Assembly: GCA_964035545.1 (NCBI GenBank)
Contig: OZ037769.1
Span: 9,446,129 to 9,510,128 of the forward strand
Origin: Bugula neritina
Taxonomy: Eukaryota > Animalia > Bryozoa
Direction: 5' to 3'
Length of the DNA stretch: 64,000 bases
The position numbers and the translations under genes are program-made. The notes under the pieces were generated by a model that made no database searches, had not been told where the DNA came from, and saw only the letters and a program-made list of their open reading frames with translations. Positions 5,957 to 57,700 of this stretch are shown in pieces; the stretch's first letter is position 1; each line of letters starts with the position of its first letter.

Positions 5957-7435
5957 TCAAGTGTAACCATCATCTATTAGCACATTCTGTTTACCCCCTG
6001 AGTATGTAAAACAATGATCTATTTTATTGAATATTACAGTTAATCGTCTATCTACGGCAACATAATGCTGTGGAGTCAATATAGGAGCTAAAGGCTCATT
6101 TTTCAAGACATTGAATAGCACTTGTCCCAGAACACCGTTCTTCAGCTTACTTAGTCGATTGTATGTTGCTTCTCGGAGCACACAGCACTGATACAGAGGA
6201 GCTAAAATACTTTCCTCATCAACATAAGGATTGCCGAAGGACTTTCCGTTATCCAGTGCCACTACTATTGAGTCTTTGCTGTATTCAAATGTTTCAATGT
6301 GATGCCGGTCAGCATTTGATATAAGAAAGTCAAATATAGAAATGTCAATCAAGTCCAGCAAACGAGGTGGCATTTCATACGGCCTTGTTCCTTTAACAGT
6401 CTTGCAATGTTCTTGGTCACGCTCCCAAACCGCCGGTTTAGTTTCTCTGTATGTTCTTCGCCATGGATGAGGTAAAGGTTGGCTAAGGGAATATGAATCT
6501 GGCAGCCAAAGAGTTAATGAACCCTCAAGAATGGCATTGTTGCCGCAAACTCCAGTTTTCGGACCACGGCAATAATGGCATTTGCCATAGAAACAAGTAT
6601 TGCCATTCTTGTAATAAAAAGTTTTCAACAAGTTATGGTGTGCAGTAGTTCGAATTTCAGATTCCAAGTCAACTTTTCTTCCTACTACCAATGGCACCTT
6701 GTTGAGCTCAATTATTCTATTCAAATGAAAGGCAGCTATTTCTGCATAATGCCTATCTTTGCCTGCATAAGGTGTACCTACCATTATGAAGTCTCGACTA
6801 TAGACTTTCGGCTTAAAAACGGTCATTTGTGTGGCTTCTAAAGTAATGGATAGCTTGAGTTGAGTTCCCTTCACACCAGCATCAGTGTGTGTTATTTTTC
6901 CATTCTGCATAGCTTTTAAAACGCAACCTAATTTAATATTAGATGAATCAGTTATCTGCCTTGAGGTCATCCACGATTCAACTAGTTGCCACGCTGTAAT
7001 GCCATCTTCAACCTTGCATTGCCAATCAATGGAAAATTTTGCTGTAAGATTAGCTATTAGCAAGTCTGTATTACTTGTGTCAGAATGGTCATGTACCAAA
7101 ACTGCTGAAATCAAAACGTCAATGATTTATTGTGAGCAAACATAATATACAAGTAGCAGTACCATGCAAGTATACTATATTATAATGGTGAAAATACGTA
7201 ATAGATACAGTTCAACCTCAAAAAAATTTCGCTGGTCAGCATGTAAAATCGTTTATAGATGTAAAACCTGATTTTAAAAATAAAATTGTGTATTTGAGTA
7301 AATTGTTGCAGTGTACTTGCCTGGCCTTTCAAGTTTGTATATGTGAGCTGTTAGCAAACAGATAGTGCCAATGACAGCAACCATATAAACTGTATTTTTT
7401 CTCTTTGAAAAGCAGGGGCTCACATTATGCACCAT
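5957..7435 (-). CDS. FAM20B: Glycosaminoglycan xylosylkinase FAM20B-like (Golgi kinase)
   Basis: The large exon 7104-5957 encodes KGTQLKL, VFKPK, YAGKDRHYAEIAAFHL, CFYGKCHYC, HPWRRTY, FDFLISNADRHH, LDNGKSFGNP and ILAPLYQCC. An upstream exon 7435-7321 (MVHNVSPCFSKRKNTVYMVAVIGTICLLTAHIYKLERP) supplies a type II membrane anchor and joins in phase 1. Confidence 0.92.
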
Positions 7436-54700: not shown

Positions 54701-57700
54701 CTAAATAGCTTAAAAATTTGGTAAGTGATGTTAAAAGTGTAGCTTAGTAATTTATGGATAATCATAGATAATAAATATGGTTAAATAAATAGCTACTTAG
54801 CCAGCTATTTACTTTTTAATTTAATACTAAAATTAGTGATACAGTTTTACGAAATTTTCAAATGCAGCAAGCTGCTAACAAATTATAGACAGCTAGTTTA
54901 TTTTATTCATTTTTTATTTATTAGAACATTAGAATTGATTGAGTTGTTTTCCTTCTCGCCACAAAATAACATATAAGCTACAGCTGCTAAAGTTTCTTTA
55001 TTGTTTCTAGCCATTTCACTTGTGAAAATAACGTATATAAAAATGCCTAGGTATGTTTACTATGCCAATGCACATGCAACTGATCTTGATCTCTGCGCAT
55101 GAACCTAGAAGAAAGTTATAGAGACTGAGAGCCATCCGCCAATAAAACGCAAGCAGGAAATTAACGCGGGGACATGAAAACCGTCTAGAAAATCGGCAGA
55201 TTTTTTAATCAGCAATAGCGAAATAGACAAGAACAAAATCGGCTAAAAAAAATCGGCCTGTGTACATGTAGCTTAGGTCAAGTTAATTATTGACTTTGGT
55301 AAACCAAGTAAAACTGAATTGATTACAAGTACATGATCAGTTAACATATGTCTGGCCTATACAGAAACTACCTATAATTAATGAAAATTGGTAAGTAGTT
55401 AAACCATTTAGTAGTCTTAATAAAAATGATACATTTGCCATTTTAGATGGCAACTACTACAATAAAGGCTTAAAACCATTGAATTACAACAGTTATTCAA
55501 TGTCTAGCAGCATTGATATAGTTGATGGCTGAAATTTTCAGTCGAATTCAAAAGCACTCTTCACTCCTCGAAACAAGATGATTAAAAATTCATCTAAGTC
55601 AAACAAAATCAAGTAGTTGAGCAAGTCAAGCCAAATCCAGCCAATGATAGCAAAGTACATCAAACCATTTCAAGCTATCAAGCAAGAGAATAAATTAAAT
55701 TCATACAAACATAATTTGCTGTATTATAACTTAGAACTATTATTAATGAAAGAAAAATTTATACAAGAACGATACTTACACTTTCAAAACATTTTTGACC
55801 AATAATGATAATTTTCACTTAACTAGAATTGGAAAATGCAATCTTTTTTGTAACTATTGTAGCTGTTGCAAAATGTAAGAAGTTGGCCTAATTTTATGTT
55901 AACAATTCCAATGCATCACATTATTGATTTGAACAAGTCAGATGCGTAAGGAATAGGGAATCAATGAAACTGATATGCATTTCCACATTGCTGTGACTGG
56001 TGCAGCCTTACGAGGGTTGTCTGGGGACAAGGTACCAGTTAATTGAGCAGTGAGCTTGTCAGCTATACTGAAGCATGTGAGCTGGAACCCTAAAGACAGA
56101 GTTCATGAGTTTTCCAAATAAATAATAAAAAAGGTTCATAGAGCCATCCTGGAGTTAGATGCAAATGGCAGAGAAACCCGCACTATGAAGGAACTGACTA
56201 ATGAGCTGCCTGAGAAGCACTGGTCTCTACCCTGGGAGTTGACTCATCTTTTTCCAAGCACAATAGAAGTCATAGGAATAATTTATCTATTCACCAGCCT
56301 ACAATTTGAATTTGCCCTAATTCAAGGCAGATGAGATTGGATGAATGGATGAATAAGCCCATGAAGAGAAAAACTGATACGCTAATTCAGGGTTGGGGCC
56401 AATTGCATGTGAATGTAATTAATTACAACTACATAAAAAATTGTGAATTACAATTATAATTACAGTTAAAAGGTAATGTAATTGATTACAATTACTTTTA
56501 TTCTCACAAGGGATACATAAAATTTACGCCATCTTACTTCTAGGGCCCAACTTCTGCGAAATTTTGACTGCAGTGAACTGCCTTTTTCTCAACAATGATA
56601 CTATACTACCTTGACTTAACTTGAACTTGTCATTTAACAGTAGGCATGGTTGGAAAAGTATGAATTTTTTAAGATTTTAAAGTTTGAAGTAATTGACATG
56701 TAATCATAAAGTAATTGTAAAAATCAATTATATTAACTGTGTAATTAATTACAATTACATTCTTATACATCAATTAAATTAATAATAGTTATGATATTTA
56801 TCATTATAATTATTGTAGTGGCTGTGGGAAGTATACCCCCCAAAACCTCCCCTATATAAGTACCTACAGCAGAACTTGTGACATTGTAGTATATTATGAA
56901 AGTAAATATAAGGTTCCAAGAGACTACAAATCCGTTAGTGATGCGGCAACCCCATGCGGCACCGCATTTTTCCGTGTGATGGGCCCACCGGAACTCTTTA
57001 CTAGCCAATCAGAGCCAACCCCCTCAGATACAAACAGCGCCTTCCGGCGCCCAGTCGGAGTGGGAGGATAACTGTCACATAGACTAGGATAATATTGTGT
57101 AGCTGTACTATATGTGTATATTTTTTTGCGACTGTTGATGACTTTTTTTGTATCTAATTAGACTTTAAATATACTGTAGTGTTGAGTTTACCCAGTGGCC
57201 TCTGTGGTGTAATGGTAACACACTTGCTTGCAAGCCAGAGGACTCGGGTTCAATTCCCAGTGGTGGCAATTATTTTACAAGCTATTTCGGCCTTTAGTGA
57301 AGTGTAGTTGTAGTACTCCGAGGCAGTTGAGTGGCCAGGAGAGCCTGATGACTGAAGGAGTAATAGATAGGCCAGTGGAGTTCAGAGAACTGGGTGGGAT
57401 GTAGTGTTGAGTTTACCCAGTGGCCTCCGTGGTGTAATGGTAGCACACTTGCTTGCAAGCCAGAGGACTCGGGTTCGATTCCCAGTGGTGGCAATTATTT
57501 TACATATACGTTTTTTATAAACGTTCACTACTTCGGTTTCTCTCATAAACCATGCAGCAGTAATTCGCGTGTACAATAATACCCCACTCTAGTAGTGCAC
57601 AAAACTACAACAATATTTATTAACTTCATTATTAAGGCCTATGACTATGAGTATGAGCTATGACATAGGAGTATGCCTATGCATATGTCTAAGGTTAAAG

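Follow-up and report, generated by a model that had tools for sequence, protein, structure and literature searches.

A miniature LTR retrotransposon of Bugula neritina carries a candidate primer-binding site complementary to the first 12 nucleotides of host tRNA-Phe

The DNA analyzed here is a stretch of 64,000 nucleotides (nt) from the 216-Mb genome of the bryozoan Bugula neritina (the window; C5:9446129-9510128), and our subject is a 330-bp element at window positions 57175-57504, together with the 12 bases, AGCTATTTCGGC (57280-57291), that directly follow its 5′ long terminal repeat (LTR). The LTR pair of the element (57175-57279 and 57400-57504) is 97% identical, and both repeats begin with TG and end with CA, the 5′ LTR closing in TTTTACA. 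Between them lies an internal domain of 120 bp, too short for coding, with AGCTATTTCGGC at its start and the purine-rich tract AGAGAACTGGGTGGGA at its end (Table 1). Among 1,243 candidates genome-wide, at least 40 are full-length copies of 86-96% identity; most of the 20 copies examined are flanked by 5-bp target duplications, and their LTR ends are identical in type. The features by which a terminal-repeat retrotransposon in miniature (TRIM) is recognized were all found, namely a length below 1 kb, two terminal repeats, a noncoding interior, a primer site, a purine tract, multiple copies, and target duplications, and the element is a genuine miniature LTR retrotransposon inserted by integrase. 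An empty-site allele was present in a contig of run X7 (2016 “symbiont metagenome”), which joins position 57168 to 57504 and skips 335 positions with 5 letters shared, so the TRIM insertion is polymorphic or recent.

Table 1. Features of the 330-bp TRIM in the window
Feature	Positions	Strand	Basis
Left target-site duplication, TATAC	57170..57174	+	TATAC before 57175 and after 57504
5′ LTR, 105 bp, TGTAG...TTACA	57175..57279	+	Direct repeat; ends shared with other copies
tRNA-like unit within the 5′ LTR, pol III (RNA polymerase III)-type gene; T4 run 57273-57276 after it	57198..57268	+	Rfam tRNA RF00005, 40.5 bits (gathering score 29)
Candidate 12-nt primer-binding site AGCTATTTCGGC, complement of host tRNA-Phe(GAA) nt 1-12	57280..57291	+	Host tRNA genes, TRIM copies, coding families, relatives in other hosts
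CTTTAG, earlier proposed as a second half-site, judged to lie outside the primer site	57292..57297	+	Not kept in TRIM subfamily 2 or in coding relatives
Purine-rich tract AGAGAACTGGGTGGGA abutting the 3′ LTR	57384..57399	+	Conserved in copies (0.97); counterpart tracts in coding relatives
3′ LTR, 105 bp	57400..57504	+	Direct repeat
tRNA-like unit within the 3′ LTR	57423..57493	+	ARAGORN (undetermined anticodon); Rfam tRNA, 40.8 bits (gathering score 29)
Right target-site duplication, TATAC	57505..57509	+	TATAC after 57504

To identify the tRNA-Phe of the host, the genome was searched with the pattern GCCGAAATAGCTCAG. The pattern matched five places, all five of which are tRNA-Phe(GAA) genes according to ARAGORN, and the sequence of this tRNA (L031:1501-1573 and L033:1501-1573) begins with GCCGAAATAGCT. 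The 12-mer occupies position +1 immediately after the terminal CA of the LTR, where no TGG is present, and is the exact reverse complement (12/12) of nt 1-12 of the host tRNA-Phe, with U12 opposite the first post-LTR base. This pairing, including the placement of U12 at the LTR boundary, had been the core of the original prediction, and it is borne out by all five host genes. The paired stretch of the tRNA comprises the 5′ strand of the acceptor stem, nt 8-9, and three bases of the D stem, and the predicted energy of the 12-bp RNA duplex is −18.7 kcal/mol. The 3′ half of the 12-mer is identical, not complementary, to the 3′ acceptor strand of the tRNA, and no UGG is available at the LTR end to pair with a terminal CCA; the sequence would therefore not permit the whole tRNA to prime from its 3′ end here.

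Across the genome, the exact 12-mer was found in 126 copies, including 103 that are preceded by CA, as LTR ends, and the 5 tRNA-Phe genes. Reversed controls gave 3 matches for the 12-mer pattern and 0 for the CA-prefixed pattern. The expectation by chance for the 12-mer at no more than one mismatch is 0.11 per window; a sequence at window positions 6734-6745, AGCTATTTCTGC, differs from the 12-mer by one mismatch, does not stand at an LTR end, and is probably such a chance occurrence. It is hardly credible, given 103 CA-prefixed copies against none in the reversed control and 126 against 3 for the 12-mer alone, that the 12 bases are a chance match, a degraded canonical site, or part of an element that is read on the opposite strand, a set of explanations in whose favor only the shortness of the match can be cited. 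A canonical TGG site was found in none of the TRIM copies or coding relatives examined, which disposes of a degraded site in the TRIM as the original prediction had expected. TGG motifs farther downstream were considered as a hidden canonical site and rejected, these being ATG-GCN codons that are not conserved. The opposite orientation was rejected as well. The strand is fixed, in the orientation assumed from the outset, by coding relatives, in which the 12-mer stands between the 5′ LTR and the gag gene and a G-run purine tract precedes the 3′ LTR; the post-LTR sequence of the other strand, TCCCACCCAG, matches nothing.

The limits of the pairing are sharp. Upstream, the LTR ends in TACA where ACTG would be needed for pairing with tRNA nt 13-16, and downstream, base 13 is C in the TRIM and A or G, in most copies A, in a coding family of the same genome (family 1, described below). 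Since base 13 varies and the CA of the LTR always precedes the site, pairing is limited to tRNA nt 1-12. The 20 aligned full TRIM copies and a second TRIM subfamily keep the 12-mer, so that its predicted conservation across copies was found. A further proposal, that of a bipartite site in which the adjoining CTTTAG complements nt 40-45 of tRNA-Phe, did not hold: the hexamer reads CTTGTG in TRIM subfamily 2 and is absent from all coding relatives, in which its positions are occupied by ATTTAT / GTTTAT, ATAACA, ATACAG, and others. Because the TRIM leader CTTTAGTGAAGT resembles the family 1 leader ATTTATCAGTGG, CTTTAG can be explained by leader ancestry, and it probably reflects chance or this shared ancestry, not a second contact with the tRNA.

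Several observations concern the TRIM as such. Each LTR (57198-57276 and 57423-57501) consists of little beyond the tRNA-like pol III unit and a T4-T5 run 3 nt from the LTR end; a hypothetical pol III transcript that continues past the first T run would comprise a U3 of ~23 nt, an R of ~79 nt, and a U5 of 3 nt. Arrays of the form LTR-internal-LTR-internal-LTR were observed at three loci, L060 (G000:C1:19095000-19097500), L045, and L059, with sites 219-465 bp apart, and an inverted solo LTR adjoins the array in L060. TRIM pieces are also present in contigs assembled from oligo-dT metatranscriptomes, in which strand, starts, and primers are unreadable.

A helper for the TRIM had been predicted in the form of autonomous LTR elements with AGCTATTTCGGC behind a terminal CA and with 5-bp duplications, and such elements are present in the genome as coding family 1. 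Its LTRs of 206 bp (TGTAATG...ATTACA) cannot be aligned with those of the TRIM, the target duplication is a 5-bp GTACC, and the 12-mer follows directly after the LTR, with the gag ATG ~18 nt further on. Family 1 encodes a Gag of 255 amino acids (aa) with Retrotrans_gag and zf-CCHC domains and a Pol of 1,017 aa in the order protease (PR)-reverse transcriptase (RT)-DUF7047-ribonuclease H (RNase H)-integrase (IN), for which Pfam placed PR at residues 29-119, RVT_1 at 298-371 (a weak match), DUF7047 at 438-495, RNase H at 512-596, and rve at 735-818. At least 11 copies have both LTRs ~4.2 kb apart, and 10 of these keep an uninterrupted pol frame of ~1012-1024 aa; the copy read in detail is interrupted between two integrase pieces. 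With gag followed by PR-RT-RNase H-IN, LTRs, and a target duplication, family 1 has the order of Ty3/gypsy elements. No Pfam match to the Ty3-type RT_RNaseH or RT_RNaseH_2 was obtained in its Pol, the RNase H of which is of the RNase_H/RVT_3 type and follows DUF7047; in the lineage profile, the RT is weakly like those of foamy virus and human immunodeficiency virus type 2, and the IN is nearest to that of mouse mammary tumor virus. The purine tract before the 3′ LTR is GGGGGAAA in family 1 and GGGGGAAA, GGGGGAG, GGGGTGA, or GGGGAGA among the coding relatives as a whole.

Two more families, 2 and 3, have integrases 43% and 40% identical to that of family 1, and an exact CAAGCTATTTCGGC site precedes them by 3.5-4 kb on the same strand, an association given by coordinates only (for example, C2:20507696 with 20503982; C7:3181847 with 3184753; C1:14651675 with 14647779). 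Three divergent gag/pol families thus appear to share the 12-mer at the same place, families 2 and 3 by their coordinates only. Since the LTR ends of the TRIM (TGTAGTG...TTTACA), its G-run purine tract, and its leader resemble their counterparts in family 1 (TGTAATG...ATTACA and GGGGGAAA for the first two), the compact (~4.2 kb) gag-pol lineage of the same genome is the likely helper of the TRIM, which would be supplied with Gag, RT/RNase H, and integrase. A fragment of family 1 that retains the end of an LTR, the 12-mer, and a disrupted gag was also seen at locus L057 (G000:C4:23822000-23831999) within a segment that is repeated in three tandem copies with a period of 3163-3179 bp and bears protein-kinase-like open reading frames (ORFs) on the minus strand; here, a segment of host gene has been duplicated along with a retrotransposon remnant.

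The Pol of family 1 has 470 relatives at E values up to 1e-10, including proteins of another bryozoan, Watersipora subatra, which are its nearest named relatives, of the leafhopper Macrosteles quadrilineatus, and of many ~4-kb contigs. We compiled 87 foreign loci, consisting of loci fetched around Pol relatives and 80 from a profile-based scan of metagenome contigs. CA followed by AGCTA[T/C]NNNGGC was present at 56 of the 87 loci, and at 47 of these 56, a gag-like ORF comes next. These foreign sites do not vary opposite tRNA nt 12-8 and 3-1 and differ from one another only opposite nt 7-4. Watersipora and Macrosteles have AGCTATTTCGGC itself, followed by an ATG within 3 nt, and other relatives carry AGCTATCCCGGC or AGCTATATCGGC; the distance from the 12-mer to the gag ATG in coding relatives is 3-25 nt. 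Elements that share one site variant mostly cannot be aligned by blastn, which argues that the identical 12-mers have been maintained and are not owed to recent common descent. In the JAAUYE project, all three contigs carry the rare variant AGCTACCTCGGC behind three different LTR ends.

The loci without the motif mostly lack the 5′ end of the element, and several have near-variants, namely AGCTATCACGGC after GA or TA, AGCTAGCCGGGC, and CGCTACCGAGGC. Different 12-mers at the same place were seen in a few relatives (L132:~330-345; L158:~1400-1420; L140). Of these, AGCTAGCCGGGC is complementary to a 5′ end of the tRNA-Lys(CTT) type and CGCTACCGAGGC to GCCTCGGTAGCG, an elongator-Met-like 5′ end; the tRNA-Lys(CTT) of B. 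neritina itself begins with GCCCGGGTGGCT. The Lys-like and Met-like 12-mers may mark changes of primer tRNA under which the rule of the first 12 nt is retained. Base 13 after the site is most commonly A (31 of the 59 sites listed), which could reflect AT-rich leaders or composition, a discriminator-like A73, or untemplated addition at the primer end. Many of the ~4-kb metagenome contigs (L095-L158) have identical ends of 90-160 bp and are seemingly circularly permuted, a pattern consistent with assembly collapse over LTRs or with one-LTR circles.

Unrelated LTRs behind a nearly constant site also bear on self-priming of the Tf1 type, in which the 5′ end of the transcript would fold back onto the site. 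The length of the duplex (12 versus 11 bp) and the missing TGG do resemble Tf1. We nevertheless rate this explanation as very improbable, for a site with hardly any variation stands behind LTRs that are unrelated to one another. A complement of the respective site was sought in six LTRs (those of the TRIM, family 1, and four foreign relatives) and found in none, one having a best match with 4 mismatches and five no match at 4 mismatches or fewer; the original prediction had likewise argued against self-priming.

Alternatively, the 12-mer could be conserved as a cis element with another role, such as packaging, dimerization, translation start context, or tRNA capture, and the primer could bind elsewhere or be of another kind. 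With only 3-25 nt separating it from the gag ATG of coding relatives, the site could conceivably have a leader function, and the primer role has been read from the sequence. Against this, the 12-mer abuts the CA of the LTR in every element, at the very position that a primer site has to occupy, the leaders share no other stretch complementary to a tRNA, the TRIM keeps the 12-mer even though it is noncoding, and the variation of the site tracks acceptor-stem positions of the tRNA. We therefore regard a cis element of this sort as unlikely.

We consider it probable that the 12 bases work as a primer-binding site for the 5′-terminal 12 nt of tRNA-Phe, which the TRIM and the coding lineage would share, with the 3′-OH produced by a cut within the tRNA. 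The acceptor and D stems of tRNA-Phe would be opened, probably by the zinc knuckle of Gag, and nt 1-12 would anneal to the site. Cleavage between U12 and C13 would leave a 3′-OH opposite the first post-LTR base, and RT would extend the resulting 12-nt primer, GCCGAAAUAGCU, into U5 to make minus-strand strong-stop DNA. During plus-strand strong-stop synthesis, the RNA primer would be copied to its 5′ end; as the plus strand would copy the primer only so far, the sharp 12-nt limit of conservation would be explained. In cytosolic tRNA-Phe, m2G10 is the only modification known in nt 1-12, and it is not known to block copying.

The cut would be made most simply by the RNase H of the element, as in Tf1, and this enzyme is its most likely source, with a host nuclease as another possible one. 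In the latter case, tRNA-Phe, either whole or as a 5′ half, would bind by its nt 1-12, and the host nuclease would supply a ready-made 5′ fragment. Fragments from the 5′ side of tRNAs are generally known to occur in most eukaryotes; the known ones end in the D loop or later and not at nt 12, and hosts ranging from protists to insects would all have to yield this one end. A ready-made fragment is, in our estimate, quite unlikely and ranks just below the cis element.

For priming by the first 12 nt of tRNA-Phe, four points have to be set on the other side of the balance. First, the case is built from assembled sequence, from which both the priming and the 12-nt fragment are inferred. Second, the D-stem cut that a 12-nt primer demands is not among the known ends of tRNA fragments, tRF-5a being 14-16 nt long. 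Third, conservation over the 20 aligned TRIM copies, computed as the per-column majority, is 0.96 for the 12-mer versus 0.94 for the remaining internal domain. Such near-equality is expected from the neutral decay of dead copies and lends the site no support of its own; conservation within the TRIM carries little weight in this respect, and the argument for function must come from unrelated elements. Fourth, covariation of the site with tRNA-Phe appears in the sequences of this genome and, indirectly, for one variant only. ARAGORN found no tRNA genes on the contigs of the relatives at the 87 loci, and scans of viral contigs for tRNA-Phe variants returned mostly phage tRNAs, with one eukaryote-type tRNA-Phe(GAA) gene (L196), beginning with GCCTAGATAGCT, that matched one variant as the complement of AGCTATCTAGGC, a match in favor of the reading. 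Host-by-host covariation of the site with tRNA-Phe is therefore put forward as a prediction, and the hosts of variant sites would be expected to have tRNA-Phe starts such as GCCGCGATAGCT, GCCTAGATAGCT, and GCCGAGGTAGCT.

On balance, we lean towards a broader proposal, namely that a widespread compact LTR lineage, with hosts ranging from protist-like ones in metagenomes to bryozoans and insects, and the TRIMs that parasitize it prime reverse transcription with nt 1-12 of a host tRNA, mostly tRNA-Phe with possible Lys-like or Met-like switches, and that their own RNase H releases the fragment. In the open-access literature searched, we encountered no account of a primer site with complementarity to the 5′ end of a tRNA; subscription papers lay outside the search, and a prior description is possible. 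The 12-mer itself appears in that literature only as a northern probe for tRNA-Phe. Few modes of minus-strand initiation are on record for LTR retroelements; besides the 3′ ends of tRNAs and Tf1 self-priming, papers of 2017 and 2019 name internal regions of tRNAs and a hairpin site that has no explanation (PMC5445492, PMC6934838). If the proposal is true, it adds a fourth mode of priming to tRNA 3′ ends, copia-type halves, and Tf1 self-priming, one that needs an internal cut of a host tRNA, and it would account for the failure of annotation tools based on alignment of tRNA 3′ ends to report a primer-binding site in such elements. It also gives a testable rule, by which the site is the reverse complement of nt 1-12 of the tRNA-Phe of the host. 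For biochemistry, the 330-bp TRIM offers a small natural substrate and the coding relatives offer compact enzymes.

Canonical LTR primer sites are stretches of 8-18 nt that start with TGG and are complementary to the 3′ end of a tRNA. The site described here is like them in adjoining the 5′ LTR, in having a host tRNA as its partner, and in being shared by different elements of one host; it differs in that it addresses the opposite end of the tRNA, measures 12 nt, and is sharply bounded. No TGG follows the LTR, and the complementarity is to nt 1-12, so that the site falls outside the canonical 3′-end type. Copia and Ty5 are reportedly primed by an internal part or the 5′ half of tRNA-iMet, the primer ending near nt 39. 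In contrast to the anticodon-arm region used there, pairing here involves nt 1-12 of tRNA-Phe only, no conserved match to the anticodon arm was found, and the coding relatives have the order PR-RT-RNase H-IN and not that of copia. The site of the Copia element FunCo1 matches an internal region of tRNA-Lys (PMC5445492). Common to copia, Ty5, FunCo1, and the elements studied here is a primer whose 3′ end is not the CCA of the tRNA, so that a cleaved tRNA is needed.

A geometrical parallel may be drawn with Tf1/Tf2 of Schizosaccharomyces pombe, for which self-primed reverse transcription with cleavage of an 11-bp RNA duplex is described (Levin 1995, as cited in PMC7472051 and PMC5445492). Both systems have a short duplex at the primer site, a primer that is the 5′ end of an RNA and needs an internal cut, and no TGG. 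Unlike Tf1/Tf2, in which the element uses its own 5′ end, the primer here would be a host tRNA acting in trans, and the site is conserved across unrelated LTRs. As for silencing, 3′ tRNA fragments target canonical primer sites and silence them (PMC7472051). Such fragments could not pair with the 12-mer site, and, if the proposed priming is true, the elements would be beyond their reach.

With regard to the coding lineage, Cigr-1 of Ciona intestinalis, a compact Ty3/gypsy-like element of ~4.2 kb with LTRs of ~245 bp and thus similar in size to the coding relatives, may belong to it. Cigr-1 and its clade are named in PMC6238403. Among the TRIMs, Cassandra has a 5S RNA gene in each LTR (PMC12486564), and PbTRIM is known from ants (PMC3532108). 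The B. neritina TRIM, which is among the smallest, resembles both in being noncoding and shorter than 1 kb and in having short LTRs, a primer site, a purine tract, and target duplications. With Cassandra it further shares a pol III-type gene in each LTR, but this gene is tRNA-like and not 5S, so the element is analogous to Cassandra and not a member of that group. Unlike both, it carries a primer site of the 5′-tRNA-Phe type in place of one for the 3′ end of tRNA-Met or tRNA-Leu.

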